The notes below the pieces were generated by a model that saw only the letters and a list, made by a program, of their open reading frames with translations, ran no database searches and was not told where the DNA came from. A DNA stretch of 64,000 nucleotides from Macrostomum lignano (lineage: Eukaryota): the NCBI GenBank assembly GCA_002269645.1, contig NIVC01001639.1, positions 1-64,000 of the forward strand, written 5' to 3'. Both the position numbers and the translations under genes were made by a program. Shown one piece after another: positions 3,574 to 51,660 of this stretch; the stretch's first letter is position 1, and the number at the start of each line of letters is the position of its first letter.

Positions 3574-6500
3574 ATGAAATATTTGGTCGTCGTGATCCTT
3601 CTATTAACACTTGGACTGAGTTATGTGAGTTTTAAATGACGAGATTCTCCGTGTCTTTTTAATGCTTTTGTTCAATACATTAAATGCTCTGCGGGTACCA
3701 AACATTAAATTAAAATGAATGCCTGTGCTAACATCTTATTCTTTCTAGGCCTCTGCCGATTGCATTATGTATGATGAGTGCTCTCGTAGCCCAACGGATA
3801 ATCCAATCAATTGCCGATACAACGGGCCCGCGAAGCCTCTTAACAACCAAAAGTCTTTGTCTCTGCTACGATCATTTTGCCCGGAAATCGCTTCTGGAAG
3901 TTCAGGGGACGTCGTGACTTGCTGCTCAGAGCGTCAGATTGAAACGTTGAGCATCCAAATGGATCGCGCAGGCCTTCTATTTAGGCGCTGTCCAGCGTGT
4001 TGGAAAAATTTTCGATCCATGTTCTGCAACATGGCTTGCTCGCCGAACCAAAGCTTGTACCTACAGGCGACCAGCTTCGACGAATCCGTAAATACAGTGA
4101 CAAGCGTGAACTACAACATCAGCAGCAACTTTGCTCACACATTCTTCAACAGCTGCAAAGGCGTTAGTCACGGCAACGGCAAAGCTATATCAGCAATGTG
4201 CGGATCTGTCAGCGTGGAATCGTGCACCGTGAAAGACGTGTTTAAGTTTTTGGGTAGTCCAGCCGAAAATCCGTATGCTCCGTTCGACATAAAATTCTCC
4301 CTTGAGGACCAATGCTTCACTATCGATGGTAAAATGCACTGCCCAATGAATGAAAGCTCAGTTCAGTGTCATCTTGGCGATCGAGAGCGAGGAGTTGCTG
4401 CCTGCTCCTGTAGCGATTGTCAAGCTGTCTGCCCGAAGAAGCCAGACACTCCAAACGATCCGAAACCCTGGCAGGTGCTGGGAATCGACGGCTGGTACAT
4501 TGTCATGGCTGCCATCTACGTCTCATTCTTAGTCGTCTTCGCCGCCTGGAACATTTATTTCTTTGCTCAAACGCACCGTAAGAATTTTAACTCTCGAGTT
4601 AGCACATCTTCCAAGGATTCGAATGCTGCATACTCAGCAGCGTCCTCCGAAAAGGTTACATCCACCGAATTGACGTACGGCCTCACCTCGCCGAGTAGTC
4701 AGGCCTTCCTAACTGACGGCAGTCGCTTGTCCGATACCGAAATCGACTGCTCAGATCGCGTCAGCGGGCAGATTGAAGCTCGAATCGAAGCCGCCTTTAC
4801 TAGCTGGGGTCTGCTCGTGGCGAAGCATCCGGTGCTCGTCATCATGCTGAGCTTTGTAGTTTGCATAGCCCTGTCCTGCGGCGTTCTGTTCTTCCAAGTC
4901 ACTACCGACCCTGTTGAGCTATGGAGCTCCCCGCAGTCTACTGCCCGCCAACAGAAAGCCTTTTTTGACAAAAACTTTGGGTAAGCAAATTGTAACTTTC
5001 CTTTGTGAATACTTACACTTCATCTGTCCTCTTAATTCTGTCTTCTACATTAAGGGTCAGCCATTACCTTGAGTTGTGCTTGAGCGCTGTTTTCGAAAGC
5101 AAAGTATTAACAATGCTAGACCGGCTTTGACTAAAATTTTCTCTTTCCCTCTCTCTTTTCTTCTCTAGGCTGGCAGTCCCAGCCTGTGCGCAGTGTGTCT
5201 ATAGTAGTTCGTGGCGCGCCGCGTTTCGCTGCATCGGCATGATTCCTTTGCAAGCGACGAGGGTACGAGTATAAGAAATTTAGCGCGGCGCGCAAATATC
5301 GAATGCATACAGCGCAAGCTAAAGCTTTTTTTCAGCTGCAGTTGGTCACCCCACAGTTCGATCAGTCCCAGGACTTGGGGGAGGGAAGGGCGCAGACTGC
5401 AGGACTGCTGTATGAAGTCTCTCTTCAGCTATTGAGGGGTTCTGTGGGCAACCCGCTGCTATGCGTGAACATTATTTAACGTATTATATATTGTAACTTT
5501 AAACCCGATTATAAGATTGTAGGGGGAGTCACTTAAGTGCATAAAAATTGTAAGGTAGATTAATATATCGATAGACGGCTTCTAGTCTATCATGTTCAGA
5601 TATGATACATTTTCAATAGCCTCGCATTACAATGGGGGGATCTAGTGCAGTCAAACCCTGTGTACAGAGAGTTGGGTGAGGAGTCTTACCCACCTGACAC
5701 TATGAGCGTAGACCCACCCATAACCCATCATTAGACTACCTGTCTCGGCGGGGGCGGTCATGCCACACGGCCCCCTTCCCACCCAGCGTGCATCAGAATA
5801 AATTAGGCCATTCTGAGCGGCCGCAATCCATCGTAATGTTTTCTTTGCAGCATTCCTTTCTTAATTCCGTCCCAGTCCCGGTGCGGCGCCTATGTGTGAG
5901 CTGTAACGGCGCTCAGAAAAGCACAAACCATTTGCAAGTTTTAAGAAGGCTCCAAATCTTGCCATAATACGTTCGTAATTCAATCTGTCCACACACCGTC
6001 TCTCTGTGTCGGTCAACTCACTTAATTGGCATATAGTTTTTTGTTGTTGCCATAGCTGGGTGCGCCGCCTCGCATTTACCTGGAATTACAGAGCCGCTTT
6101 AAATAGGCTACTCTTCTACTCACTCCAACCCCTCTCTAACCATAAGTAGTGTCGGGCAGAAAGCCAGTTACTTGACACACTCTTAAACCAAATATCTGTC
6201 TGAATTTGCTGGGTTATGCTATTTTAAGTTCAAAAAGTGGCCTGATATGAGATGCCAATGCAACGCACGATGTACTCATTAAGTGTGCACTGATGAACCG
6301 CTCGAACCTTTCTTGTCATTTCAGACCATTCTACCGAACTGAGCAGGTGATCATTATCCCGAGAAACCAGACGCACTACATTCACGAGCCAGAGTCTCCT
6401 TACTTTGATCCTCCAGTGCACAGGGCATTCGGGCCAGTTATTAACAAAAAGTTCCTTCAGAAGGTGCTTAATTTGCAGACAAACATCACTAACATGAAGG

Positions 6501-9485
6501 TGTGGAGCAAAGCCAAGAAACGAGACATCAGCTTGACTGACATCTGCTTTAAGCCGCTTTCGCCTAGCTATTCAACCTGCGCGGTGCAAAGTCCTTTGGG
6601 CTACTTCCAGTCCAACACCAGCACGTTGAACAAGGTCGCCATAGATTTTGACTTCGGTCTGACCTACGCCGACTTTGTCACACACCTGATTGCTTGCACA
6701 AAAAACCCGCTCAGCGTTAATAGCGACATCAACCTGAAGCTGAGCTGCTTCTCAGAGTGGGGCGGCCCGATCTACCCTTGGGTGGTATTTGGCGGCTACA
6801 GTGGAAAAGAGTACCTCAATGCTACCGCCATTGTTCTCACGTTTCTCGTTAATAACGACGCAAATCGGGAATCGGAGCAGGTAAAAGTATTGTCATATTG
6901 ATTCGAATATTATATAGCTTAATGATTGGCATTTGCAAGCGTGTGTTTATCTGCTTCAATTACAGGTTCGCATGGCCATGGAATGGGAGGAAGCTTTTCT
7001 AAACGTAATGCACAAGTTTAAGAACGAGTCGCACGAAGAACTCGACGTGCGTTATTCGTCTGAGCGTTCAATTCAAGACGAGCTAGAACGGGAGTCCAAC
7101 TCAGATGTAGTTACCATTCTTGGTAGCTACCTCTTAATGTTTGCCTACGTGACGTTGACGCTTGGTCAATACAAATCCTGTAGACGGCTGCTAGTTAATG
7201 TAAAGATTACACTAGGCCTGGTTGGAGTTGTGATTGTTCTAGTGGCAGTTTTCTGCTCCCTGGGCGTATGGAGTTACCTGGGATTTCCTGCCACGCTGAT
7301 AATCATCGAAGTAGTTCCCTTCCTTGTTCTGGCAGTCGGAGTTGATAACATATTCATTCTGGTGCACACATTGCAACGTGACTTCGTCGGAGCAGACAGT
7401 GTGGAGGCAAAGGTGGCCCGGGTGGTCGGCCGTGTTGGTCCCAGCATGCTGTTGAGCAGCCTCAGCGAGTCTGTGGCCTTCTTTTTCGGCGCTTTTACCC
7501 CCATGCCGGCGGTGAGGGTGTTTGCGCTTTACGCTGGCATGGCTGTGCTGCTGGACTTTCTGCTCCAGATAAGTTGCTTTGTTGCCGTTCTATCGCTGGA
7601 CGCCAAAAGGCAAGCCGCTAAACGGATGGATCTACTATGCTGCTGTGCGTCTAAGAAAGTGGAGAAGGCGGAGAAGGCAGCGAATAATAAGCCAGAAAAG
7701 ACCGAGAGCAAAGGCCTGCTGTTCCAATTCTTTAAGCGCTTCTTGTCTACCTTTATCTTCAACCGTTGGGTTCGACCAATAATAATTAGCATCTTTGTCG
7801 GCTGGGCCTGCGTGTGCTTGGCCTGCGTACACAACATTCGTGTTGGATTGGACCAAGAGCTGAGCATGCCAGAAGACAGTTACGTGACCTCATACTTTGA
7901 CGGCATCAAGAAGTACCTTAGCGTCGGCCCGCCAGTCTACTTTGTGGTCTCCGGACCGATGGACTTCGCCAATCCGGTGCACCAAAATCTCATCTGCAGT
8001 CGCGCGGGATGCCCACAGAAGTCGATGCTGAATCAGCTGTCTCAATTGGCTGAGGCGCCGAACTACTCGCACATTGTAAGCCCACCGAGCTCCTGGCTTG
8101 ATGACTACGTTGACTGGCTTGAGCCGAGCGAGACTTCGCCTTGCTGCAGCTACCACAAGTCCGGCTCGTTCTGCCCTGCATCGAACCGCACCGCCGACTG
8201 CACGCCTTGTGGCGTCAATTTTACAACCGACGGCTGGCCAGTGCAGGGCGAGTTTTTCCGCTACCTCGACTTTTTCCTCAAGGACAATCCAGGCGTCGCC
8301 TGCCCCAAGGGCGGCCATGCGGCCTATGCTGCGGCTCTTAATCGCGAGAAACGGCAGTCTCGCACAGTGGGGGTGTCCGCCTCTCATTACATGACCTACC
8401 ATTCGGTTTTGCGCAACGGCGATGATTTCATCAATGCGTACAAGATGGCCGTAAAAATTTCGGACGACATCACGAGTCACTTCAAGGACACGACTGGACG
8501 CGACGATCTGAAGGTGTTCCCGTACAGTGTGTTCTACGTATTCTACGAGCAGTACCTCACAATTGTGACGGACACGGCTATCAATCTGGGGGTCTGCTTG
8601 GCAGCGATCGGCCTTGTCACCCTGATGCTGCTTGGCTTCGACTTCTTTGCCACGTTCATCATTCTGCTGACTATTGGCCTAATCCTGCTGTCAATGCTGG
8701 GCCTGATGTTCTTCTGGAACATATCGCTGAATGCCGTCTCGCTTGTTAATCTTGTCATGGTGAGTACTACTCATGCAACAACAAAGCTACTTGTTATCAT
8801 ATTTACTTCTGTAACTATTAGTCTCGACCTTCTGTAGCCTTTGGTACACTTTATCGAAACGTACTTCAGTACAAACGAAATAATATTAATTTACTCAACA
8901 GGCACTCGGAATCTCGGTGGAGTTCTGTTCTCACCTGGTCCGAGCATTTACCGTGTCCGCTGAGAGGACGCGACTGGAGAAAGCGCGCGACTGCTTCGTC
9001 CACATGGGCAGCTCCGTGTTTTCCGGCATCACCCTGACGAAGCTGGGCGGCATCATTATCTTGGGCTTTGCCAAGTCGCAGCTGTTCCGAGTGTTCTACT
9101 TCCGCATGTACCTGGGTATCGTGCTGTTCGGTGCTCTGCACGGTCTCCTGTTCCTGCCAGTGCTGCTCAGCTACATAGGTAAGCTCGTTTGGATCGATAT
9201 TAAGGATTTACCTAGTAATTTAGTGAGGCCTGACTCTATTGGCCGCTATACCGAGTTTACTTAACACTTAAATACGAGCCTATTAGTCAGTCACGGGGCT
9301 GTAAGCAGGTACACCCACAAACTTCGTGGTCGTGAATCGCACGACAAGCCGTACTCAACCCCACCCTGGCAACTGTTGCATTTCAAGCACTGCGATCTTC
9401 AATCGAAAATTGCTCATTTTCAGGGCCGGTCAGCAAGCACAGGCAGATTGTTCGCAAGGTGGCTATTTTGATGGAGAATATCTGA
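3574..9485 (+). CDS. NPC1: Niemann-Pick C1-like sterol transporter, 6 coding exons
   Basis: Exons 3574-3624 (signal peptide; in-frame upstream ATG at 3550), 3749-4980, 6325-6880, 6966-8759, 8902-9178 and 9424-9485, with consistent phases. Cys-rich N-terminal domain, GPFYRTEQ, sterol-sensing domain ([12 protein letters not shown]), GPPVYFV and GKGGHAAY-like motifs. The last exon is the least certain. Confidence 0.95.
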
Positions 9486-10669: not shown

Positions 10670-11162
10670 CAGTCAGTTGTCTGACAGTCAGTTGTCTTAC
10701 AGTCAGTTGTCTTACAGTCAGTTGTCTGACAGTCAGTTGTCTTACAGTCAGTTGTCTTACAGTCAGTTGTCTGACAGTCAGTTGTCTTACAGTCAGTTGT
10801 CTTACAGTCAGTTGTCTTACAGTCAGTTGTCTGACAGTCAGTTGTCTTACAGTCAGTTGTCTGACAGTCAGTTGTCTTACAGTCAGTTGTCTTACAGTCA
10901 GTTGTCTTACAGTCAGTTGTCTGACAGTCAGTTGTCTTACAGTCAGTTGTCTTACAGTCAGTTGTCTTACAGTCAGTTGTCTGACAGTCAGTTGTCTTAC
11001 AGTCAGTTGTCTTGCAGTCAGTTGTCTTACAGTCAGTTGTCTTACAGTCAGTTGTCTTACAGTCAGTTGTCTGACAGTCAGTTGTCTGACAGTCAGTTGT
11101 CTTACAGTCAGTTGTCTTACAGTCAGTTGTCTGACAGTCAGTTGTCTTACAGTCAGTTGTCA
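10670..11162. repeat. 15-bp minisatellite (CAGTCAGTTGTCT[T/G]A), about 33 units
   Basis: Direct tandem periodicity; it produces the TTDCK and SYSQL ORFs. Confidence 0.97.
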
Positions 11163-12581: not shown

Positions 12582-13376
<795 letters not shown>

Positions 13377-13670: not shown

Positions 13671-15454
13671 TCAAACATCTTGACTTTCACGGAGACAGTC
13701 AAGCCGGGATGCGGTCAGCTCAATAACAATTAGAGCCACGACAAGAAGGGCCAGGACGCTCATAAACAGCACAAAGAAGCATCTGTCGGCGGCCAGAGCC
13801 ACAATACGCCATTCGTTACACCGATCGGACTCGGCCGCACGATTTGCGTCCGCAACTCGTTCGGATCGATCTGAATTTGGCTGGGAATTCCCGACTTGGG
13901 CCTGCAAATGGCCAGAGAGGGATTTTTCTAAAGCATGTGGGGCCTTTTTCAATGAGCTAACAAATGCTTGTCGAGAGTCACTCTCACGCAGTTTCCAATT
14001 TGCAGGCCCTTCAGGACGAATCGATTGAGAAAGAGCACCCGAACGGCTCTGTTGTCCACGAGAGTGTCGGCTTGCTGTCGCAGATGGCAGCCCAGAACGA
14101 AAACGTTGCCGAGTACGTTCGCCATTGTCATGACAACAGCCAGGCTGTAGTAACCCGCTGTAGCCAGAGACAGTTATGGTTAATAAAGAAAACAATAATG
14201 AAAATTGTAAACGAAATGACACTCACTAAGCAGGGTAACGGACTCGCTCTGATTTGGAGTGTAGTTGCCAGAGAGCTGCAAGAACACGCACATTGACAGC
14301 ACAATGGTGACGCTGAACGAGACTCGCTCGCCGCACTCTGGCGGCAGTCGAAAGGTGAGAGCGGAGATGGCGAGCAGCAAGATGCTGGGCAGGATGAGGT
14401 TCACCAAATAGAATGTAGATCTTCTCTACAATACAACCAGATCACTCGTTAATGAATTAATTTTGAATCGAACCAACTACCTTGACCCACTAGTTATTAA
14501 CCGCAGAGGCAACTCTGAGTTAGCACTATACCTGAAATGTGACACTGAACTCAATGTAGGCGTAGGTAGTCATGTCCCTCATTCTGTTGCTCATCCGGAG
14601 CAGACAGTACTCGTTGCTCTCTGTGAGAAACGTCGTCACAGTGTCGCTTGGATTTAGTGAACCAATTTGCAGAGCGACGCTCTCGGTGATCATGATGTTG
14701 GCCAGCTTCAGGACGCAAGTCTGCCTGTCGTACGGGAAGTTCAGCAGCTTTAGCTGACACTTCGAGGTTACTTGGACTTCGACTATTTGGTGCACTCTAC
14801 CGTTGCTGAAAACCTTTGCGGGCGATTTACCGGCGGTCAAGTCCTTAACTTCTATGCTGGAATGGCAGCGGAACGCATGTCGATAATTTATAAAAAGATA
14901 AAACTTTGTAATGGATTAGAGTAGTCTTACACGTCATAAAATGTGACATCCGGTTGCCAGATCATATTCACGGGAACAATTATGCTTTTCACCTGGTCAT
15001 AGCTGGAATTAAATTTTCCAAGCCACGATAACCGTTGGTCTATCCAGTTCTGAAGTGTAATAAACTTGAAAATTAAACTAATAACTTCTCATACATTAGA
15101 TAAATACTATAAAACTAATTGTGAAATTGTCAAACCATCGATAGCCAAAGTTGCTGAGTCAAATGCTGCGCCGTTGAGTCCTGAAGAGTAAAAGTTTTGA
15201 ATAACCATATCGCGTGAATGACAAATTGATTGACGCTGTCTCACCATTTTGACCAGGCTCGCAAACAGGACAAAAGCGTTGATTAGGTTGGCGGTGCCAT
15301 TGTCAGGGGGCGGCCGGGCTCCAGCTACGTAGACTCCGCCCGAGGTCAATCCGAGACCACGCATCAAAACTTCGTCCGGCGAAGGCGCGAACCCATCTGT
15401 CAGGTTGCAGGTGCAGCAGAGAGCCAGAGGGAAAATCACTGGGATGACGCGCAT
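13671..15454 (-). CDS. Cys-loop ligand-gated ion channel subunit A (divergent nAChR-like, cation-type pore), 7 exons, 432 aa
   Basis: Exons 15454-15245, 15180-15136 (45-nt exon typical of nAChRs), 15049-14931, 14856-14532, 14425-14227, 14157-13988 and 13901-13671; all GT-AG and phase-consistent. Signal peptide, RPP motif, W-x-PD, Cys-loop CQLKLLNFPYDRQTC, M1-M2 PECGERVSF and M4 EWRIVALAADRC. Confidence 0.9.
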
Positions 15455-15906
15455 CGCAGTAATGAATCGACTGGTCAGGATTGGCAGCTTGAAGAGTCCG
15501 CCCGCTGTCTGCTTTTAGTTCAACTACTAAATGGGCTTATTTGCCACGAGTCTGGGGAGAGGCAAGCATATTTACACGGCTAAAGTTTGATGAAAATGGC
15601 CACCTGACTTAATAAGCGAACCAATGGCTTGCATTGTAGTCCGGGTTTCGACCGGTACCGGTTTCCACTTCCAATAGACCAGCAGGGGAGCTAGATTATA
15701 GAGGCTCACATTAAATGACAGTTATTTGCTGAAACAGTTTTGCAGGTTTCTCCGAAGTGAAGAGTAACTATTGACTCAGTAGCAGCTTCACTTGCATGTA
15801 GAGCAGCGCCAACCATAGAAACGAATTATTCATATTGCGTACTGCATAAAGTTCCACAAAAGTGGAAATGACATAACACAGCATGTAAAGTATTGCGTTC
15901 GAGTTG

Positions 15907-16265
15907 GGGGCCGTAGCCCAGCGGTAGCGCAGCTGCTCTGGTGTGCCAGCGACCCAGGCTCGATTCCAAGTGCAGTCACATTAATTTGGGGCTGAATTGG
16001 AATCTCGGCTTGGCTCTGCTCGTGCAATTAACGGCCTTGAGAGCCAACCCCCCAAGGCGCAGGGAAGTGTACATGCCTAACGATAATATAAAGTTAGAGC
16101 CGCTGTACACTCCTGTGTGAGTGTGTGCCTGCGTACGTATCCGCGCGCTTGTATGCCTGCTCAGGGGAGTCGACGGAATGGACAGTAATGCCTCTCGCCG
16201 GTTGTGTGCCTATGTCGCTTAAAGTGCGCCAGGGTGCACACAACCCCCATGCCTCTAATAAAAAA
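15907..16265 (+). mobile_element. tRNA-derived SINE, full length
   Basis: A-box TAGCCCAGCGG (15914-15924), B-box GGCTCGATTCC (15957-15967), A-rich end, and 15-bp target-site duplication ATTGCG[T/G]TCGAGTTG at 15892-15906 and 16266-16280 (14/15). Homologous copies lie at 1660-1935, 21240-21400 and 41101-41170. Confidence 0.85.
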
Positions 16266-16374
16266 ATTGCGGTCGAGTTGCCACACTATGAAGTTATAAA
16301 GTGAAACGAGGGATATATGGAAACAGTTTGCAAGAGTTATGAGGCATATTGAACAGCAGAATAGAATCAACCAT

Positions 16375-16600
16375 GGACAACAACACTAGTACAACCTCTG
16401 TCTTCATGTCTTCGATCGGCACATTGCACTCGATTTTCATCTCTTGAAGCCAACGGTTACACACTCCAACGGCCCACTTCAGATCTCTAATGTTGTCCAA
16501 GTTGCCGCGATTAACATTCTGATCACGCTGATCTAGCCCTTCTGCTGAAAGCCGATTAACCGATTCGTAGTCTCCAGCGAAGTCTTCACTGAAGTCAACT
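16375..16600 (-). mobile_element. Possible Crypton/DUF3504-like tyrosine-recombinase transposon N-terminal remnant
   Basis: KWAVGVCNRWL..IEDM..LLS in ORF 16294-16674 resembles, from memory, the N-terminus of Crypton-type proteins. No catalytic domain is visible. Confidence 0.35.
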
Positions 16601-17431
16601 TCAGTTGGTTTAAAATATAACTTTCTTCCATTTTTCCTTGCCAGTATTACCAGTAAGCTTAGACTTTGCTTCAAGATCAGTCATGGGTTAAAGCCGAGTT
16701 AAAGGAGGGGGAGACAGACTAAACAATGCGAATCTCTTTTATGTCTATGGTCTCATGTCTTTTCTATCTTCTCAATTAAATACCGTCTTTTCATGTCCAG
16801 TAAAATCAAGTTGAAATGTATTCCAATAACTCCCACAAAATGAAAGTGGTTTAAAATAATAAGTGTGCCATACATGTAGTTTTGAGGTTGGTTTGAGTTT
16901 CAGTCCCGAGAGCCGGCCGAAACCTCTCGGAAAATGGACTTCAACGTGGTTTAATGAGAGCTTGTAGAGGCGCCACTAGAGAGTAATTCGACACCAAAAT
17001 TAGTTCCATTAATATTTCGGATAGTATAGAATTATTTGGAAAAAACTGAAACAATTGAAAACTGCGTATTCTGATGTTGCCTTTTTGATTGTTAAATCTT
17101 TAATTGACTTGATTTATCTTCAGGGGGTTCCGGGCATCCGGGTACAGTGGGGAGGCGTCGCCGACCATTCCGCTAACCCCTGGCAACCACGGGCAGCTAG
17201 TGCTGCGGTGTCGCGCAGGGAGATCCGGTGGTGCCGGTGTCCGCAGCGCAGTCCCCCTCCCGAGAGTGCAGAAGGTGGATGGTCGCTCACCCGGTAGCTC
17301 TTAGTTAGCAGACGAGTTGATTATGTAATCAAACACTGACTGCGCTTAGTCAGACCCTAATCAGACCTTAGTTATGACCGTCAGTAAGTACGAGTAAAGT
17401 TGTAAAGATAGGCTTGTATGCACTTATAGGC

Positions 17432-20400
17432 TCAGGCACCCAGACAATCGCTCCTGGAGACGGAGGTTTCAACAACTAGGAGGGCGATGGCGAGAGACAT
17501 TGTGGCAGCCAGCATGACCAGGAAGAAGCAGCTGTCTGCCGCAGATGCCACGATCGCGAATTCGTTTTCCAAAACTCCCCGATCGTCCGGAGTTGGCCCG
17601 ACAGTTTTTCTGTCGTTGCTGATTCCGCAGAGCGCCAGCCGGTTGAGAAACAGCAGGCGAATGGCTCGGCTTTGAACGCGCGACTCGCTGAACTGTCGAT
17701 AATGACAGCTCAGGACGAAAGCGTTGCCAACTACGGTTAGAATTGTCATGGCAACCGCCATGCTGTAGTAACAGGCTGCAATTGTTTAATTGTGGTTGTG
17801 AATACAAGCGTCCTGGACATACATCAGGGGTCGAGAAACTCCGGACCGCAAAGCCTCTCTATCCGGCCCTCGGATCCTTTGAAACTTCACAATGCCTCCG
17901 GCTCGCTCAAGGTTTGTCTCTTCTCTTCTCTCTCTATTTTTCTCCACTCCACTCCACTCCACTGCACTCCATTCCACTCCACTCCACTCCACTCCACTCC
18001 ACTCCACTCCACTCCACTCCACTCCACTCCACTCCACTCCACTCTACTCCACTCCACTCCACTCCACTCCACTCCACTCCACTCCACTCCACTCCACTCC
18101 ACTCCACTCCACTCCACTCCACTCCACTCCACTCCACTCTACTCCACTCCACTCCACTCCACTCCACTCCACTCCACTCCACTCCACTCCACTCCACTCC
18201 ACTCCACTCTACTCCACTCCACTCCACTCCACTCCATTCCACTCCATTATACTCCACTCCACTCCACTCCACTCCACTCCACTCCACTCCATTCCACTCC
18301 ATTATACTCCACTCCACTCCACTCCACTCCACTCCACTCCACTCCACTCCACTCCACTCCACTCCACTCCACTCCACTCCACTCCACTCCACTCCACTCC
18401 ACTCCACTCCACTCCACTCCACTCCACTCCACTCCATTATACTCCACTCCACTCCACTCCACTCCACTCCACTCCACTCCACTCCAATCCACTCCACTCC
18501 ACTCCACTCCACTCCACTCCACTCCACTCTACTCCACTCCACTCCACTCCACTCTACTCCACTCCACTCCACTCCACTCCACTCCACTCCACTCCACTCC
18601 ACTCCACTCCACTCTACTCCACTCCACTCCACTCCACTCTACTCCACTCCACTCCACTCCACTCCACTCCACTCCACTCCACTCCACTCCACTCCACTCC
18701 ACTCCATTCCACTCCACTCCACTCCACTCCACTCCACTCCACTCCACTCCACTCCACTCCACTCCACTCCAATCCACTCCATTATACTCCACTCCACTCC
18801 ACTCCACTCCACTCCACTCCACTCCACTCCACTCCACTCCATTCCTCTCCTCTCTTCTCCTCTACTTTCCCCTACTCTCATCTCCTCTCCTTCTCTTCTC
18901 TCTTCTCCACTCCTCTCCTTCTCTTCTCTCTTCTCCACTCCTCTCTCCTCTCTTCCTCGCTCCTGCCATGCGCTAGATTCTCTATCTGGCCTTTGAGAAT
19001 AAAAGTGTACCGACCCCTAGCATAAATGGAACAGTAAGCTGTAAAATACCAGCACGCTTACTAAGCAGGGGAACGGACTCGCTCTGCGTTGGAGTGTAGT
19101 TGCCAGAGAGCTGCAGGAACACGCACATTGACAGTACAATGGTGACGCTGAACGAGACTCGCTCGCCGCACTCTGGCGGCAGTCGGAAGGTGAGAGCGGA
19201 GATGGCGAGCAGCAGGATGCTGGGCAGGATGAGGTTCACAACGTAAAACTTGGACATGCGCTGTTGATAAAAAGTGAATTCTGTTTTTTGCTTGGCTTCT
19301 GTCGTGAGAGTTTTCTTAAATAATCCAACCTGAACAATATGGAAGAGCAAACTTGACAGCAAACAGAATCAAAAGTCTCCGGCAAACTTACCTGAAAGCT
19401 CACTAAAAACTCAGCGTACTCGTAGCCCACAGCTGGCACTATACGGAGACTCAAATTCGCAATGCAAAATTCATTGCTCTTGACCAGAAACTCGACCAGC
19501 GCTTCGTCCAGAGCTTTTCCGTGCGGTTCAACATTCAGCTTGATCTTCTCCGGTCGCTGCATCATCGTGGCCGCTTTGATGATGCAGACCTGCTTATCGT
19601 ACGGAAAGTGCAGCATTGACATGCCGCACTTCAGAGTCACTACTTGACCAACTGTGCGCAGGACTTTGCCGCTGCGTTCTAACAGCGCTGGCGCGACTGC
19701 AGCGGTGATGTCTTTCACCTCCATGCTGCGCGGTTCGGTAGGTGCAAGGGGGGAGGCGAAATATGACAATACACTTTTTTAGTGAAACTATTTTTTCATT
19801 CACACCCGTAGCTTAAGGCTATTATTTGCAGACAAACTTGTGCTTCTTTCAGCAGGACATTGGTCAAGCAGTCGCCTATGCGACCTATAGCTCCCTGCGA
19901 CTTTTTCTATTCCCGAATCTCAAGGAAGTGCTCAAAGAAACTCGTTTTTCCAACCTATAGAAGTCATCAGGAGCACCACGACGATGGAGCTCCGGAGTAT
20001 TCCTGAAGAAACCTTCCAGTACCCCACCTGGGACTTTTTTGACACACCTCATGTGTGTTGAGTCCGAGGCGCACTCACAGGCTTATCAAGCTAGCTTTCC
20101 GTGTGAAATGCTACTAAAATAGCTAACTGAGATAGGCATTTTCCAATCGCATTATGTGTTGTACTCGTAAGACACACGAACTCGAATGGTATCTCGAACA
20201 AATCTTCAAGTTTGCCGCATTTTGCCTAGTTCGAGCCTCGGGTAGAATTCACCACCGCTGTCGCCTCTGTGTCCTTGATTTCTTGATGTTGATCAGCGGC
20301 CAGTTCAACTAGACTCGATGTGTCGTGACTCTCTTGGTGCCTCTTGTCGAAAGCCCCCGGCCCTACATCCAAGTCCGCTCCCCAGTTCGACTTGTGTTTG

Positions 20401-22190
20401 GTGAAACCCCGAAAGGTACGTCATCACTGAACACAAAGAACAATCTCTGCTGATGGCAATCTCGTTTTCTCACATTTTCTGATAATTTAATAATTGGAAA
20501 TATTTTTCTCAAAGGTCTCCTAAATTTGTCTCTCTTTTCCCTCTTATTCTGATCTTCTCTCGTTGCTCTTATTTTACCGTCTCAAAAATTTGTCTATGGT
20601 TAGAATATGGGGGCTTCGCTCCCCCACCTTAACGGACGCTAGCAGCAGAAACTATCTATGGTAAAGTGCGTACTACAAATATGTCTATGGCCTTTGACAG
20701 CTATCAATGTCGTCTGCCAATTCCTCCTCACACATCATAGAACGCAACATCCGGCATCCAGATTCGTTCTACCGGCACCAGAATGTTGCTAGTTGAATTT
20801 GCGGTGGCATTGACTTTGTCCATCCATGACAGTCGGCTGTCAAGCCATTCCTGCAATGCAGTATAGACAGAGCTAGTATGAGAACACATATGACTGTTTT
20901 ATTGTAAACTTATTCTCACCAGAGATAGCCATAGTTGCAGTATGATCTCTTGTGCAGATGAGTCCTGGGAGTTGAAAAAAATTATAATTCAATTAGGGAG
21001 AAGCAGGTAAGAGCAAGCATGACTACAATCTAACGCCGCTCAATATTAGGCCTTCGCCATGAATTTTATCTACGACAAAGTCAATCGTCTGGAGTGACCT
21101 CACAGTATTCATCAAATCACATACGTTGTACCACTTTGCGATTGCCTCTCTGCAGCTACTTCATCGGTACTGAAGCTCTGCTCGAACTTCATCTAGAAAT
21201 AAAATCCGCTGTTCTGTCACAGGTAAATGTGTCTGACTCTTGCGCTACGACCCCTGGTTTAATTACGTATTTAATTACATTAATTTGGAGCTAAAATTTT
21301 ACAGGGGGTTGTCGTGTGATTTACTCCCATGAGGGCCAACCACCAAGGCACAGAGAGTGTACATGCCTGATGACTAGAAAGTCAGGGTCATGTGTGACAG
21401 CATGTGCTCATGCCTGACGACTAGAAAGTCAGGGTCATGTGTGACAGCATGTGCTCATGCCTGACGACTAGAAAGTCAGGGTCATGTGTGACAGCATGTG
21501 CTCATGCCTGACGACAAGAAAGTCAGGGTCATGTGTGACAGCATGTGCTCATGCCTGATGACTAGAAAGTCAGGGTCATGTGTGACAGCATGTGCTCATG
21601 CCTGATGATTAGAAAGTCAGGGTCATGAGTGACAGCATGTGCTCATGCCTGACGACTAGAAAGTCAGGGTCATGTGTGACAGCATGTGCTCATGCCTGAC
21701 GACTAGAAAGTCAGGGTCACGTGTGACAGCATGTGCTCATGCCTGACGACTAGAAAGTCAGGGTCATGTGTGACAGCATGTGCTCATGCCTGACGACTAG
21801 AAAGTCAGGGTCATGTGTGACAGCATGTGCTCATGCCTGACGACTAGAAAGTCAGGGTCAGCACTGGTACTTAGGACGATGTCGCGGAAGGCGAAGGCGT
21901 GGAGACGGTCCCTGCTGCAAAAATTCATCTATATAATTCATGAAGCGTCATAGCAAGCGACGGTTTTTGCTCACCACCTTCACCAGGCTGTTTAGCTGAA
22001 TAAACACTGTCACGGTATTTGCCTGCCCGTTGTCAGGCGGTGGCCGAGCATCCCTGTTGTAGGAACCGTTGCGCAGACCCAGCAGGTGCATCGCCAGATC
22101 GTCAAATGAAGCTTTGTCAGACTGTGATGTCGACTGCGACGGGAGTGTGACGAAGCTAACGGCAAAAGTGATAATATGAAGAATGTTCAT
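17432..22190 (-). CDS. Cys-loop ligand-gated ion channel subunit B (paralog of A), 6 exons, 418 aa
   Basis: Exons 22190-21975, 20964-20920 (45 nt), 20850-20732, 19725-19392, 19260-19062 and 17775-17432, phase-consistent. Signal peptide, RPPPDNG, EWLDSRL, IWMPD, Cys-loop [24 protein letters not shown], short M3-M4 loop. Confidence 0.9.
17942..18957. repeat. (CTCCA)n pentanucleotide array grading into CT-rich sequence, in the last intron of channel B
   Basis: Direct periodicity; source of the STPLH/EWSGV ORFs. Confidence 0.97.
21364..21860. repeat. 47-bp minisatellite (about 10.5 units) derived from the SINE hairpin segment, in intron 1 of channel B
   Basis: Unit TGCCTGACGACTAGAAAGTCAGGGTCATGTGTGACAGCATGTGCTCA, preceded by SINE-homologous sequence at about 21240-21363. 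Confidence 0.93.
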
Positions 22191-25440: not shown

Positions 25441-28400
25441 TTAGATGCCCTCGGAGCCGAGGAAGCCGCTATCCACGATGCGACCGAATAGGGCGTAGGC
25501 CTCGCGGTAGGCGTCCTCGGGCATGCCGTCCAGGATCAGGTCGAGAACGCGGCCGTCGCGGGCGAATTCCATGGTGCGGACGAGTTTGTTGCGCTGCTCG
25601 GCGGTCAGGTTGACCTTCTTGGCGTAGTCATCCACGCTGCGCTCCTCTGTGGGGAGGGTTCAGGATGGGCAGGATGGGTCAGGATGGGTCAGGATGGGTC
25701 AGGATGGGTTAGGATGGGTCAGGATGGGCAGGATGGGTCAGGATGGGTCAGGATAGGTTAGAATAGGTCAAGATGGGTCAGAATAGGTCAGGCCGGGTCA
25801 GGGCAGGTCAGAATGCGTCAGGATTGGTCAGGATTGGTCAGGGTGGGTAAGAGTGGATCAGGATGGATCAGGATGGGTCAGGATGGAGGATGGGTCAGAA
25901 TAGGTCAGGCTGGGTCAGGGTAGGTCAGGATGGGTCAGGATGGGCAGGATTTGTCAAAGTAGGTCAGGCCGAGTCAGGGTAGGTCAGGGTGGGTCAGGAT
26001 GGGTCAGGGTGGGTCAGGGTGGGTCAGGGTGGGTCAGGGTGGGTCAGAATGGGTCAGTTGGACTCAAAATAGCTTAGGCGAAGTCATATTAGATCAGAAC
26101 GGACTAGATCAAGTCAGCTGTGAGATGAGTAGAGTCAGTTAAGTCCCTTATAGCCGTGAGAATAGTAGCTGAGCAACTTTGATCAATTTCTTCAGCACAT
26201 GCGGCAGTCTGGTGGATTGCCTGACATATTATTTTTTTGAGTCATGCTATGAATTTCTGGATGGCAACTGAAAGAACCTGAAAGATCTTTTCTATTTCTT
26301 ATTCTCTGCGTTGTGGGGGGCATCCAGTTCTGCTGCTGTCTGCAAAGGTTCTGCGACAGGCTTTGACATTCAATAATAGTTGAAGCAATTCGATTCAAGA
26401 TGGAACAAAGATTTAGCCAATTTATTGTGTTTTTACTGTTCAAATGTTTGAGAAGACATAAAAAAATGTTCTGGTAAATGTTTCCTGCTTTTGCATTTGC
26501 ATTGACTTTTCTAATATCTCCTTTTTCGTGTCATTGTTCGTGGTTGACTTTCTGTGTCTGAGTTCAGGTCTTCTGTGCATTCGTAAGTCGGCTGTTCTCA
26601 CCCTATCTCACCCTATCTTACTCCATCTACCTCCATCTAACTCTATCTCATCCTATCGCATCCCTTCTCACAATGTCTCATCCTATCTCATCCTATCTTA
26701 TTTCATCTCATCCAATCTCACTCCACCTCATCATATTTCACCGTATTTCACTTCATCTATCCTTATCTAACTCCATCTCATCCTATCTCATCCCATCTCA
26801 TCCCATTTCATCCCATTTCATCCCATTTCATCCCATCTCACTTCATCTTATCCAATCTCATCCTATGTCATCCCATCTCACTCCATCTCATCACATCTCA
26901 CTCCATCTCATCACATCTCACCCCATCTGATCCCATCTCATCCTATCTCATCCCATCTCATCCCATTTCATCCCATTTCATCCCATCTCACTTCATCTTA
27001 TCCAATCTCATCCTATGTCATCCCATCTCACTCCATCTCATCACATCTCACTCCATCTCATCACATCTCACCCCATCTGATCCCATCTCATCCTATCTCA
27101 TCCCATCTCATCCCATTTCATCCCATCTCACTTCATCTTATCCCATCTCATCCTATGTCATCCCATCTCACTCCATCTCATCCCATCTCACTCCATCTCA
27201 TCCCATCTCATCATGTCTCATCCCATCTCATCCCATCTCATCCCATCTCACCACATCTTATCCCATTCCATTCCATCTCAATCCATTTCAATGTCAGCCA
27301 AAAATTCTTCATATTCTGAGTTCCTTCATCTCAATGAATATTTTCCTATTAAATTCTGCCAGTCACGACCGCGAACAGCAATATCTGTTTAACTAAAACA
27401 GAAAAAAATTCTGCATTTCTCAGACTCTCATTTCGTTCCCTTCAGTGCCGGATTCCCTGCCCGAGCTGCAGCTCTAAAAATAGACTTTAGAGTGTAGAAG
27501 AAGCAGGATTGTTAATAATCTCACTCTGTATTTCCGGGCTCCTCTTGCAGTATTTGAAGAACTTGAAAGCATCTCAGACAGACAGCAAGTGAAATGAGAA
27601 TTAACGCTAATATATTGTTTGAGAACTTTCGAACAGTGACTACTCGATGAGATTGGCTCACCGGTCAGCAGCTTGGACAGGGTGTCCGGGCTGCCCTCGC
27701 CCAGGACACCGGGGATGAGCCAGTAGTGGAATCGTTGGATGAACATCTTCAGGATGATGCTGGCTGGCCGGTCCTCTGAAAGCATAGGAAAGTGCGCGAT
27801 GTACTTTTGAGAGTGGACTAAACTCATTTAGGGTTTAGTACTGTAATAGTGCTGGGGTGAACTAGTGTCTGATAGAGGGAGTGAACTAGTGTCTGATAGA
27901 GGGAGTGAACTAGTGTCTGATAGAGGGAGTGAACTAGTGTCTGATAGACGGAGTGAACTAGTGTCTGATAGAGGGAGTGAACTAGTGTCTGATAGAGGGA
28001 GTGAACTAGTGTCTGATAGAGGGTGTGAACTAGTGTCTGATAGAGGGAGTGAACTAGTGTCTGATAGAGGGAGTGAACTAGTGTCTGATAGAGGGAGTGA
28101 ACTAGTGTCTGATAGAGGGAGTGAACTAGTGTCTGATAGAGGGAGTGAACTAGTGTCTGATAGAGGGAGTGAACTAGTGTCTGATAGAGGGAGTGAACTA
28201 GTGTCTGATAGAGGGAGTGAACTAGTGTCTGACAAAGGGAGTGAACTAGTGTCTGATAGAGGGAGTGAACTAGTGTCTGATAGAGGGAGTGAACTAGTGT
28301 CTGATAGAGGGAGTGAACTAGTGTCTGATAGAGGGAGTGAACTAGTGTCTGATAGAGGGAGTGAACTAGTGTCTGATAGAGGGAGTGAACTAGTGTCTGA

Positions 28401-47585: not shown

Positions 47586-50500
47586 TTAGCAGCATCCGCC
47601 ACCGCCAGACTTGACCGGCTGAGTGCCCGGGTTGACTTTGATGGCCGGCCGAGTCTTTTGGTCGGCTGTCACAGGCCCCATTCGTGCCTTGATCTCCGAG
47701 GCCATGGACAAGAACGCCTGCTCCACGTTGGTGGCGTTCTTGGCGCTGGTCTCCAGGAATTGAATGCCCAGGGACTCGGCGTATTCCTGGTGGGTTGAGG
47801 GGTCAGGTGTGCAACTGGGTGTACAGTGGGGTCTGTGGGAGTGTGGCAGTGGGTGTACAGTGGGTCTATGGGGTGCGCAACTGGGTGTACAGTGGGGTCT
47901 GTGTGGTGTGCGACTGGGTGTACAGTGGGTCTATGGGGTGCGCAACTGGGTGTACAGTGGGGTCTGTGGGGGTGTACAACTGGGTGTACAGTGGGGTCTG
48001 TGGGAGTGTGGCAGTGGGCGTACAGTGGGGTCTGTGGGGGTGTGAGTGTGGCAGTGTGTGAACTGTGAGGATGACTGGTTGTACAATCGGGTCGGTCTGT
48101 GGGTGTACATAAAGGGTTTCGAGAACAACCAGAGTACACTGGGATTCAAGGTTAACATCAACAGAAAGTAGCCTCACCTTGGCGGTGGCAAAGTCCACCA
48201 CCTTGTTGGCCGTGAGGTCGCACTTGTTTCCCACTAGCAGGCGGTTGACGCTGTCGGAGGCGTAGCGCTCGATCTCCTGCAGCCAGTTCTTCACGTTGTT
48301 GAAAGAGTCCTGGTCGGTGACGTCATAGACTACGATGATGCCGTGGGCGCCGCGATAGTAGGATGAGGTGATGGTGCGGAACCGCTCCTGGCCGGCCGTG
48401 TCCCAGATCTAGAATGATGGTTGCGAAAGCAGAATTATATTTGTATGACCAGATTCTGTTGTGACTGCAATCTAGTCTGACCAGATACTGTTGTGACTGC
48501 AATCTAGTCTGACCAGATTCTGTTGTGACTGCAATCTAGTCTGACCAGATTCTGTTGTGACTGCAATCTAGTCTGACCAGATTCTGTTGTGACTGCAATC
48601 CAGTCTGACCAGATTCTGTTGTGACTGCAATCTAGTCTGACCAGATTCTGTTGTGACTGCAATCCAGTCTGACCAGATTCTGTTGTGACTGCAATCCAGC
48701 CTGATTAAAGATTATATTGTGACTGCAATCCAGTCTGACCAGATTATATTGTGACTGCAATCTAGTCTGGCTAGATTCTGTTGTGACTGCAATCCAGTCT
48801 GACCAGATTCTGTTGTGACTGCAATCTAGTCTGACCAGATTCTGTTGTGACTGCAATCCAGTCTGACCAGATTCTGTTGTGACTGCAATCCAGCCTGATT
48901 AAAGATTATATTGTGACTGCAATCCAGTCTGACCAGATTATATTGTGACTGCAATCTAGTCTGGCTAGATTCTGTTGTGACTGCAATCCAGTCTGACCAG
49001 ATTCTGTTGTGACTGCAATCTAGTCTGACCAGATTCTGTTGTGACTGCAATCCAGTCTGACCAGATTCTGTTGTGACTGCAATCTAGTCTGACCAGATTC
49101 TGTTGTGACTGCAATCCAGTCTGACCAGATTCTGTTGTGACTGCAATCCAGCCTGATTAAAGATTATATTGTGACTGCAATCCAGTCTGACCAGATTCTG
49201 TTGTGACTGCAATCTAGTCTGACCAGATTCTGTTGTGACTGCAATCCAGTCTGACCAGATTCTGTTGTGACTGCAATCTAGTCTGACCAGATTCTGTTGT
49301 GACTGCAATCCAGTCTGACCAGATTCTGTTGTGACTGCAATCCAGCCTGATTAAAGATTATATTGTGACTGCAATCCAGTCTGACCAGATTATATTGTGA
49401 CTGCAATCTAGTCTGACCAGATTCTGTTGTGACTGCAATCCAGTCTGACCAGATTCTGTTGTGACTGCAATCCAGCCTGATTAAAGATTATATTGTGACT
49501 GCAATCCAGTCTGACCAGATTATATTGTGACTGCAATCCAGTCTGACCAGATTCTAATGTGACAAAGCTAATATTTGCAGTAAAAAATTGAAGTTCCTAA
49601 AAATTGAAAAAAAAACATAAATAACCTGCAGCTTGATAGTTTTGCCATCCAGTTCAATAGTTCGAATCTTGAAATCCACGCCAATGGTACTGATGTAGCT
49701 GTCTGTGTAAGTGTCATCAGCAAAGCGCAGCAGAAGGCAGCTTTTACCAACACCCGAGTCGCCAATAAGCAACAGCTTGAACAGGTAGTCGCTGATAGGT
49801 TTGGGCAAGGAAGTGAAGGAAAGTAAGTATTACATTACAGTTTGATTTTTTATCCAAAAAGTACAAATATACTGTAATATACTATTAATAATTGCTTCAA
49901 AACTGTCTTTAAGAATTTAGATTTTTTGTAAGATATGCTAACAAAAATTCTCAAAAGTCTAGATTAGCATGTCATATTAGTAATTAGATACAATGGTATA
50001 ATATATCATACTATAACATCTGCATAATATGCCATATTGCAATAATAATCTTATATAACATAAAGCAGGTAAATTAGGCAGCTTTAAACACTTTAAATGT
50101 TTGAACAATCCACCTCACTGTTTCACTTGCCATCATTCTAACCCACTCTCTTGTTGCATCATTATGTATCTTTTTGCCCTATGAATTTTATACAGTAATA
50201 TGTATGTAAAATTAATTATTTATGTATTTATTTATTCCATTTGCCCTAATGTGCAATGGGCAAATGTGCAAAGATCAGCTCAGCTATAGTCTACTGCATG
50301 GTGCATCTGAAGGCTGCATATGGCTGTTTAGTCCAATGACTAAGGGGTTGCCATGTATACTTTCAATTATCCTAACTAATGCAAGTATCCATTTTATAGC
50401 TGGGTGAACTAAAGCAATGCAGAATTATGTTTTGTTTAAGGATTCAAATAAGATTGGGAATCAAACCCAAAACCTTTTAATCATAAGTCCAATGCTCTAA

Positions 50501-51660
50501 CCACTAGGCTATAACCCCCGTAATATATATTTGCCTTAACTAACTACCTCTAATGCCCAAGGTGCATGCATATCATCATGGGTTTTTTATATGTTGCTCC
50601 CCTTAATCATAGAGAATATCATTGCAGGGGTAGATCCAAAGGAGGGGCCAAGGGAGCCATGGCCCCCCTTAGCTGCGGCCAAAGAAATTTTGATCATATT
50701 TTTTGGCTTGCTACTATGCCAAATCTTTTTTATTTTAATTTCTTTTAATTCTAATTTAGTTTATTGGCAAAAAAAATATATTTGATTGCTTTGGGACCTA
50801 CCTTGCTATGTTTTTTGTTTATACTCCCACTTTGCCCATGTCTACCTCTGTTTTAAACATAGAAATAAATAATAAATAAAATAATTTAATTTATACAAGT
50901 TTAGAAAAATACTTAAGCATATTATATTTCTAATATAATACATGCTATTAATATTTAACAAATAAGTTTTAGTTTATACCACATATATATATATATATAA
51001 TAGTTTAGCCTATAATAGAAAGAGAAGTTTAAAATTCTTAAAATCTTTTTGTTTGTCTATTTTATTTATTTAATTAGGCTTATAGCCTAATTTTTTTATA
51101 TTGATTATTTTAAACAATTAGCTAATCTTTAAATTAAAAAGAAATCTTTACTTTATAATAGTTACCTACTACATAATAATTTGTCAAGTTATTAACTTAA
51201 CTATGTATTATTTCAAATGGTTTAAAGATATTTTTTTCTAATAGGAACATTTTAATATAAAATTAAAAAATAACCTGTAAAACTAAGAAAGTTAACTCAG
51301 TGACAACCTTTGTCACATTAACCATTAGGTCTAGCCATTGCAATTTGAATATCACAAAAGATACAATACTGTCAACATAGATGGTTAAAATACATACATT
51401 CATTATCCTTTATGACACCAAAGCAAGATAGGTAAGCAAAGTTTAATTTTATTTAATATGCAGCATTATCAATTTATATCTTAGCTATATCTTATATTAT
51501 ATATCTGATTTTATATTTCATATCTATACTACTTTAGGTCTAGACTACTATAGATACAAACAAAGTAAAAAAGCATGAGTGTATAACCCAGTGAGATAAC
51601 AGGAAAGCTACTAAATGAGCAAAGAATGATTCAAATCGTTACTTACTATTCTGGAGTCAT
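47586..51660 (-). CDS. RAB1: Ras-related protein Rab1, 4 coding exons, 203 aa
   Basis: Exons 51660-51647 (MTPEY), 49791-49626, 48408-48178 and 47786-47586. Motifs [59 protein letters not shown] and a C-terminal CC prenylation motif. Confidence 0.97.
47805..48065. repeat. Irregular 32-34-bp minisatellite (GGGTGTACAGTGGGGTCTGTGG core) in a Rab1 intron
   Basis: Direct periodicity. Confidence 0.9.
48445..49555. repeat. 32-bp minisatellite (GACCAGATTCTGTTGTGACTGCAATCTAGTCT) with higher-order duplication, in a Rab1 intron
   Basis: Direct periodicity; identical ORFs at 48632 and 48826 show a 194-bp higher-order unit. Confidence 0.97.

Follow-up and report, generated by a model that had tools for sequence, protein, structure and literature searches.

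How can two neighbouring genes whose silent sites are saturated with differences still share 178 nucleotides (nt) of nearly identical coding sequence? The question is raised by a 64,000-nt stretch of the genome of the flatworm Macrostomum lignano (NCBI GenBank assembly GCA_002269645.1, contig NIVC01001639.1, positions 1 to 64,000; hereafter, the window), which contains genes A and B, two complete tandem genes for subunits of Cys-loop receptors, in the same orientation and with pore exons 4.8 kb apart. A short DNA tract has been copied between these neighbouring paralogs, and non-allelic gene conversion restricted to the transmembrane-coding region is very probably the explanation.

Genes A and B and the tract they share

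The segments 14227-14404 and 19062-19239, both coding, both on the minus strand and both within exon 5 of the respective gene, differ at 7 of 178 nt (14236, 14252, 14253, 14281, 14300, 14351 and 14380). A recount gave exactly the number reported in an earlier interpretation of the same DNA made from the letters and open reading frames (hereafter, the sequence-only reading). The features involved are the following.

13671-15454, minus strand: gene A, Cys-loop receptor subunit of 432 amino acids (aa); open frame, 7 exons, all splice sites GT-AG
15454-15245, 15180-15136, 15049-14931, 14856-14532, 14425-14227, 14157-13988, 13901-13671, minus strand: exons of gene A
17432-22190, minus strand: gene B, Cys-loop receptor subunit of 418 aa; open frame, 6 exons, all splice sites GT-AG
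22190-21975, 20964-20920, 20850-20732, 19725-19392, 19260-19062, 17775-17432, minus strand: exons of gene B
14227-14404, minus strand: probable conversion tract, gene A copy; exon 5 nt 22-199, coding for M1 (from NLILPS), the M1-M2 loop, M2 and the M2-M3 linker
19062-19239, minus strand: probable conversion tract, gene B copy; exon 5 nt 22-199
14405-14425, minus strand: first 21 nt of gene A exon 5, outside the tract; pre-M1, RRSTFYL
19240-19260, minus strand: first 21 nt of gene B exon 5, outside the tract; RMSKFYV
14022-14157, minus strand: part of exon 6 (M3) of gene A with raised similarity to 17640-17775 of gene B; 72.7% nucleotide identity over 139 nt (blastn)

Mismatches at position 14405 (nt 21 of the exon) and position 14224 (intron position +3) delimit the tract, whose length is thereby limited to at most 180 nt. 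Comparison of the two gene regions by blastn aligned 14219-14404 with 19054-19239 (95.2% identity over 186 nt) and detected no non-coding similarity beyond this block, the introns being unrelated; in the window, no further copies of the tract were found besides those of A and B. Just upstream of the tract, the first 21 nt of exon 5 are 47.6% identical between the genes (14405-14425 and 19240-19260), and none of the four conserved residues in the preceding eight codons is encoded by the same codon in A and B, as opposed to 52 of 56 inside the tract. Thus, the divergence of both the beginning of the exon and the flanking introns, which the sequence-only reading had asserted, is borne out.

The assignment of A and B to the receptor family is based on profile and structure comparisons. 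The Pfam profiles Neur_chan_LBD and Neur_chan_memb match the products of gene A (2.6e-28 and 4.6e-18) and gene B (4.1e-29 and 1.3e-18) above the gathering scores, and the Cys-loop, with two cysteines 13 residues apart and an FPxD motif, reads CQLKLLNFPYDRQTC in A and is also present in B; both Cys-loops quoted in the sequence-only reading are found in the gene models. The full length of B aligns with the structures of the nicotinic acetylcholine receptor (nAChR) alpha4/beta2 and of 5-HT3A with E values from 1e-35 to 1e-30; residues 42-395 of B correspond to residues 20-368 of nAChR alpha4 (5kxi_A, E 6.8e-35), an alignment that covers M1-M4 and from which the transmembrane segments of the tract were assigned. 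In this alignment, M2 of the tract is paired with the alpha4 sequence ECGEKITLCISVLLSL, with GER at positions -2' to 0', a glutamate at -1' and a leucine at 9' (the gate). A glutamate at M2 position -1' implies cation selectivity, and A and B are accordingly predicted to be members of the cation-selective branch of the pentameric (Cys-loop) ligand-gated ion channels.

The exons of 45, 119 and 199 nt in gene A have the same sizes as those of J, a paralog annotated by NCBI, a pattern common within the flatworm family; in gene A, the stop codon is followed by an AATAAA signal. In protein searches, the nearest paralogs of A are 43-49% identical to it, relatives above 44% identity come only from M. 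lignano, and the next relatives in the databases searched, at 35% identity or less, are 5-HT3A-like proteins of molluscs, annelids, brachiopods, acoels and fish. A and B are members of a clade of pentameric ligand-gated channels of the cation type that is specific to Macrostomum. A cluster of variable and constant exons, of the protocadherin or UGT1 type, and mutually exclusive exons were also considered for this locus and rejected, because each copy of the tract is part of a complete gene that has a start codon, seven (A) or six (B) exons, a stop codon and GT-AG splice sites of its own.

Divergence inside and outside the tract

Synonymous (dS) and non-synonymous (dN) divergence was estimated for each exon with the Nei-Gojobori method, a check that the sequence-only reading had proposed. 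Rather than being similar across all exons, dS is low in the tract and saturated elsewhere. Within the tract, dS is 0.10 and dN is 0.02, and 57 of the 59 amino acids and 52 of the 56 degenerate codons (93%) are identical, whereas in all other exons of A and B the proportion of synonymous differences (pS) ranges from 0.45 to 0.90 (0.68 overall, that is, saturated) with a dN of 0.56. Outside the tract, the proteins are 44% identical and share 54 of 122 codons. Chance is excluded as the source of the identity: in 5000 permutations of codon columns, the minimum number of mismatches in any 177-nt window was 38, compared with the 7 observed, and at silent sites the maximum number of identical codons in 20000 permutations was 47, compared with 52 of 56.

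The same discordance between the tract and its flanks is seen when other paralogs are included, at the DNA level with paralog C (P0015; DNA in locus L001 of assembly GCA_002269645.1) and at the protein level with the tandem pair of C and its neighbour D. Outside the tract, the three genes are about equally distant (dN 0.56 for A-B and 0.58 for both A-C and B-C), with 46% identity of the extracellular domains (ECDs) for A-B and 37% for A-C; in the tract, A and B differ at 7 nt, compared with 30 nt for A-C and 27 nt for B-C (P about 4e-7). The pair C-D is more similar than A-B in the ECD (61% vs 46%) and less similar in the tract (81% vs 97% of amino acids).

The sequence-only reading had further described the M3-M4 part as strongly diverged. 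M3, however, is less diverged than this suggests: exon 6 of A and B is 64% identical at the nucleotide level and 50% at the amino acid level, with dS of about 0.7 and 16 of 27 shared codons, where A-C and B-C are saturated. The raised similarity of exon 6 is not significant when taken alone; by analogy with the pair J/K described below, it may be the eroded remnant of an older, longer tract that also took in intron 5 at a time when the introns were still alike.

A second tandem pair of receptor genes

A second pair of tandem paralogs, J and K, settles the mechanism as conversion at the DNA level. It is found on three contigs (NIVC01000984, NIVC01003722 and NIVC01003094, analysed as loci L002-L004), where J (P0285, PAA50078.1 and others; BOX15_Mlig024351), with exons of 231, 45, 119, 331, 199, 161 and 219 nt and the same architecture as A, is in each case preceded by its upstream paralog K on the same strand. 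The ECD exons of K and J encode proteins that are 36-59% identical, with dS from 1.35 to infinite, and exon 5 has a dS of 0.04 with 64 of 65 codons shared. The near identity takes in 34 nt of intron 4, exon 5, all of intron 5 and 149 of the 161 nt of exon 6 (M3), and drops abruptly at both ends; in the unique sequence compared, 5-7 of 264 nt and 2-6 of 189 nt distinguish J from K, and intron 5 varies among the copies chiefly through the length of its (TGTGC)n array. The tract, about 620-680 nt long, is located as follows.

L002, 3341-4022 and 9685-10301: J/K tract
L003, 2974-4022 and 7942-8558: J/K tract
L004, 3346-4022 and 7942-8558: J/K tract

Because the identity of J and K continues through an intron, selection on codons or protein cannot account for it. 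The contig copies are 96.8-99.5% identical to one another in non-coding DNA. Among the six sequences, the three copies of J are identical, as are the K copies of L002 and L004 (K2 and K4), while the K copy of L003 (K3) is a mosaic that, at 8 sites in the 3' half, has the nucleotides of J and not those of K2 and K4; conversion has therefore happened again after the copies separated.

Codon bias and the background level of codon sharing

In A and B, the GC content at third codon positions (GC3) is 0.78-0.80 for the tract and 0.40-0.68 for the remaining exons, a modest rise that codon bias would predict as well. Shuffling of codons among identical residues within the tract predicts 55% shared codons, compared with the 93% observed for A-B. 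At the 27 residues conserved across the four genes A, B, C and J, every pairing with J has 18 codons in common, while A-C share 19, B-C share 21 and A-B share 24. Relative to the level set by J (67%), the probability of finding at least 52 of 56 codons shared between A and B is 5e-6 (range 5e-6 to 3e-4).

The two-thirds sharing of codons in exon 5 spans subfamilies that are 35% identical overall (window 14227-14425, L001 11745-11943 and L004 7976-8174), and it may stem from codon bias that depends on context, from constraint or from exchange in the distant past. The argument of the sequence-only reading that selection on the protein would not preserve third codon positions has to be qualified for this exon, in which about 67% of the codons at conserved residues are shared even with a 35%-identical paralog; the 93% of A and B lies above the baselines.

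Proposed history of the A/B tract

In the history proposed here, A and B are old tandem paralogs, and a DNA break in exon 5 of one of them would have been repaired from the neighbouring paralog 4.8 kb away, by interlocus conversion without crossover, with the repair overwriting about 180 bp that code for M1, M2 and the M2-M3 linker. Only where purifying selection on the pore had kept nucleotide identity would strand invasion and heteroduplex formation have been possible, and the tract would be confined to M1-M2(-M3) because only there was this identity sufficient. The tract starts 21 nt into the exon and ends at the exon 5 donor, without informative intron bases; the 3' limit would correspond to the end of homology for the heteroduplex, because the introns of A and B are unrelated, and the 5' limit lies within the exon. 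From these observations we infer the repair pathway, the homology-limited boundaries and the dispensability of selection for a shared pore. Gene conversion between anciently diverged tandem paralogs, as put forward in the sequence-only reading, is supported by the tract dS of 0.10 between saturated flanks, the excess over the codon baseline and the intron-spanning tract of J/K. The exon as the unit of exchange is not supported, given that the A/B tract begins inside exon 5 and the J/K tract extends from part of intron 4 to the M3 exon; nor does the window contain the receptor array that had been suggested, but a pair.

Several points weigh against this reading. Past exon 5, A and B match only in the invariant GT and 5 of 7 donor bases, so that the A/B tract is devoid of informative non-coding DNA and its DNA-level nature is proven solely by analogy with J/K. 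The tract is known from assembled sequence alone, its donor and recipient are indistinguishable, and C is the only outgroup of the A/B subfamily available as DNA. Finally, the exon 5 baseline with J, 18 of 27 codons (about 67%) against an expectation of about 50% (P 0.003-0.03), is partly unexplained; as it exceeds the prediction from codon usage, part of the synonymous identity does not come from conversion.

When the seven differences are polarised with C, five fall on A (three silent C-to-T changes, T58N and P64T) and two, both silent, on B. T58N and P64T (window 14253 and 14236; exon 5 codons 58 and 64) are the only amino acid changes since conversion, and both are in the M2-M3 linker of A. 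They are absent from the UniProt model P0013, another copy of A, which has the T...P linker residues of B, and in the B copy of P0014 an S of B is replaced by T. These residues hint that exchange took place in copies of the A/B locus as well; the mosaic signal among these copies is at the protein level only.

The introns downstream of exon 5 differ greatly in length, with about 1286 nt in B and 69 nt in A, and much of the gap is a microsatellite.

17942-18854, strand not assigned: (CTCCA)x183 microsatellite, 913 nt, in intron 5 of gene B (TRF)

Intron 5 carries a pentanucleotide microsatellite in the genes B, J and K but not in A or C. It is a possibility that these arrays are the break sites at which the conversion events started, although the association is anecdotal.

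Alternative explanations

Exchange of the pore exon might not be confined to tandem neighbours but extend to dispersed paralogs (A, B, C, E and others), in a concerted evolution of the whole family. In the tract, dS is 0.42-0.43 for A-C and B-C while the other exons are saturated, and C shares 74% of the codons inside the tract compared with 35-44% outside (P 1e-4). The antisense tail of P0004 implies a fourth pore exon, in which 70-78% of third positions are shared, and the pair F-G is 92% identical at the amino acid level in the tract, as opposed to 33% in the ECD. This support is offset by the more distant J: at the 27 sites conserved in the four genes, C shares 19 codons with A and 21 with B, which is no excess over the 18 of J, and the similarity to C fades to the background level in the linker. 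Since J shares as many codons as C, the case for recent exchange with C is removed, and conversion including C, initially favoured by the dS of 0.42 and the 74% of codons, was abandoned. Family-wide exchange is therefore regarded as possible but doubtful.

Conversion may also have been favoured by selection, if A with B and J with K co-assemble into heteropentamers in which a matched M1-M2(-M3) module is advantageous, the "variable sensor, constant pore" of the sequence-only reading. The same domain has been homogenised in two independent pairs, an 11-residue motif of M2 is invariant in every member of the subfamily of A, and the tandem layout on one strand fits co-regulation. Moreover, the only amino acid changes after conversion fall in the M2-M3 linker of A, through which the ECD is coupled to the pore. 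A passive process limited by homology would place the tract at the same site and fits equally well, however; the tandem pair C-D has not been homogenised (81% of amino acids in the tract), and homomeric channels would need no matching. The contribution of selection is thus considered rather unlikely. The same applies to a fuller version, in which conversion of the transmembrane module would be regular and selectively kept in Macrostomum tandem pairs, with A and B, and J and K, as heteromer partners whose pore is matched and whose ligand-binding domains are free, and with the M2-M3 linker re-tuned afterwards, which would account for the two amino acid changes of A.

Selection at the nucleotide level, without any exchange of DNA, could in principle act through codon bias, codons required for cotranslational insertion, splicing enhancers, RNA structure or an antisense element, in addition to constraint on the protein. 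Exon 5 is codon-biased (GC3 about 0.8), its 67% codon sharing with J, at 35% overall identity, goes beyond the prediction from codon usage (P 0.003-0.03), between subfamilies pS in the tract levels off near 0.48 rather than 0.7, and an antisense frame is open in some copies. Against this, the 93% of A-B lies far over the baseline (P 5e-6 to 3e-4), A and B have four-fold fewer differences than A-C or B-C at similar age, the folding z-scores of exon 5 are unremarkable, the antisense frame of A and B is interrupted by a stop, and the near identity of J and K also covers 34 nt of intron 4 and intron 5 in its entirety. For A and B, this explanation is largely refuted, and we consider it very improbable.

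RNA structure was also examined separately as a conserver of silent sites and rejected, with exon 5 of A, B and C folding no better than shuffled sequences (z-scores +0.25, -0.90 and -0.13). An Rfam search found no match within the genes.

The weakest alternative, a chimeric or mis-polished contig with one pore exon placed in both genes, is suggested by the many near-identical, hard to assemble copies in the hidden polyploid genome of M. lignano (PMC5704211, PMC10733133), but is extremely unlikely considering that the two copies differ at 7 sites within intact, correctly spliced and distinct genes, that P0001 reproduces A exactly and P0014 reproduces the B-then-A order with the shared pore, and that the J/K pattern is found on three separate contigs with copy-specific variants.

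Other copies of the locus and the receptor family

The P0001 model (UniProt A0A1I8HXL4, M. lignano) matches A along 248 aa, with 100% identity across exons 3-6. P0014, likewise from UniProt, fuses exons 5-6 of B with the complete A in the same order, with two amino acid changes in B and two in A. These models derive from other M. lignano sequences, and their agreement with the window argues against an assembly artefact. The multiple copies of the locus are due to the recent hidden polyploidy of M. lignano (PMC5704211, PMC10733133).

The M. lignano UniProt models P0004, P0014, P0016, P0137 and P0138 are fusions of two to four neighbouring receptor genes with intergenic read-through and are unreliable as proteins; their existence shows that the receptor genes are arrayed in tandem. 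At its C-terminus, P0004 consists of an adjacent, inverted pore exon translated in antisense. In L001 (12581-22581, Mlig_3_7 contig), gene C is without the M4 exon seen in UniProt P0016, and of the neighbour D only exons 1-3 are present; either the copies differ structurally or the L001 copy is truncated.

Surroundings of the genes in the window

The remainder of the window is rich in repeats and contains parts of other genes.

21362-21860: 47-mer repeated 10.6 times, in intron 1 of gene B
12583-13376: (TATC)x198, just downstream of gene A
10670-11161: 15-mer repeated 33 times, further downstream of gene A
25660-64000: more than 20 long minisatellite arrays with periods of 10-47 nt and up to 2.2 kb each, together occupying most of these 38 kb; many open reading frames here are translations of repeats
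3767-8837, plus strand: NPC1-like gene (Niemann-Pick C1, sterol-sensing domain) with three long open exons, about 50% identical to animal NPC1
25444-25659, minus strand: terminal coding exon of an upstream gene with LDL-receptor class A-like cysteine motifs; fused to B and A in P0014
50453-50512, minus strand: Rfam match to tRNA, at 34.6 bits barely over the gathering score and covering model positions 7-64 only; not called by ARAGORN

No NPC1 protein of M. lignano was found in the protein collection searched. The match at 50453-50512 is probably a tRNA-derived fragment or repeat.

Comparison with known systems and implications

Regional gene conversion among tandem paralogs has been described in the protocadherin clusters of fugu, zebrafish and human (PMC1852091, citing Noonan et al. 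2004). As in those clusters, tandem paralogs with a divergent recognition part share a sharply bounded stretch with near identity at synonymous sites, the converted part has an elevated GC3 (in protocadherins, the 5' part is divergent and the 3' part nearly identical), and the argument is the same, namely that constraint on the protein is blind to silent sites (PMC1852091). The differences concern the setting: the genes studied here encode ion-channel subunits and come in pairs rather than arrays of tens, each gene has a full set of exons with no shared constant exons, the A and B genes are saturated outside the tract, and the tract of 0.18-0.65 kb lies on the membrane pore, in place of EC4-EC6 and the cytoplasmic part of the protocadherins. 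The A/B tract is the same kind of event as the regional conversion of protocadherins and calls for no new mechanism.

Classical interlocus conversion between adjacent duplicates is known from the globins, the red and green opsins, RHD/RHCE and CYP21A2/CYP21A1P. The flatworm genes resemble these in non-reciprocal copying between neighbours, in short tracts and in mosaic copies among haplotypes (compare K3). The classical duplicates, however, are similar over their whole length, whereas A and B, with saturated silent sites and about 44% protein identity, have a single island of homology.

As channels, A and B share with nAChR alpha4/beta2, the muscle nAChR and 5-HT3A the C-x13-C Cys-loop, GE(R/K) at M2 positions -2' to 0' and the leucine at 9'. 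They differ from these receptors in their very short M3-M4 loop and in that, in the databases searched, no match from beyond M. lignano exceeds 35% identity; vicinal loop-C cysteines were not seen in the translations of A and B, where the position of loop C was not mapped specifically. Searches of the literature yielded no report of conversion in flatworm Cys-loop receptor genes.

The locus provides a clean and quantifiable case of domain-restricted conversion between otherwise saturated paralogs, in which a conserved island of about 180 bp was evidently sufficient for exchange. Inclusion of the M1-M3 region will lead to wrong phylogenetic trees and wrong dS estimates for flatworm ligand-gated channels. 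From the direct repeats 4.8 kb apart, one would also expect deletion or chimera alleles that combine the sensor of B with M3-M4 of A. The finding of the same homogenised module in two independent pairs yields a testable prediction of heteromer partnership for an orphan, lineage-specific clade of channels in a model flatworm.

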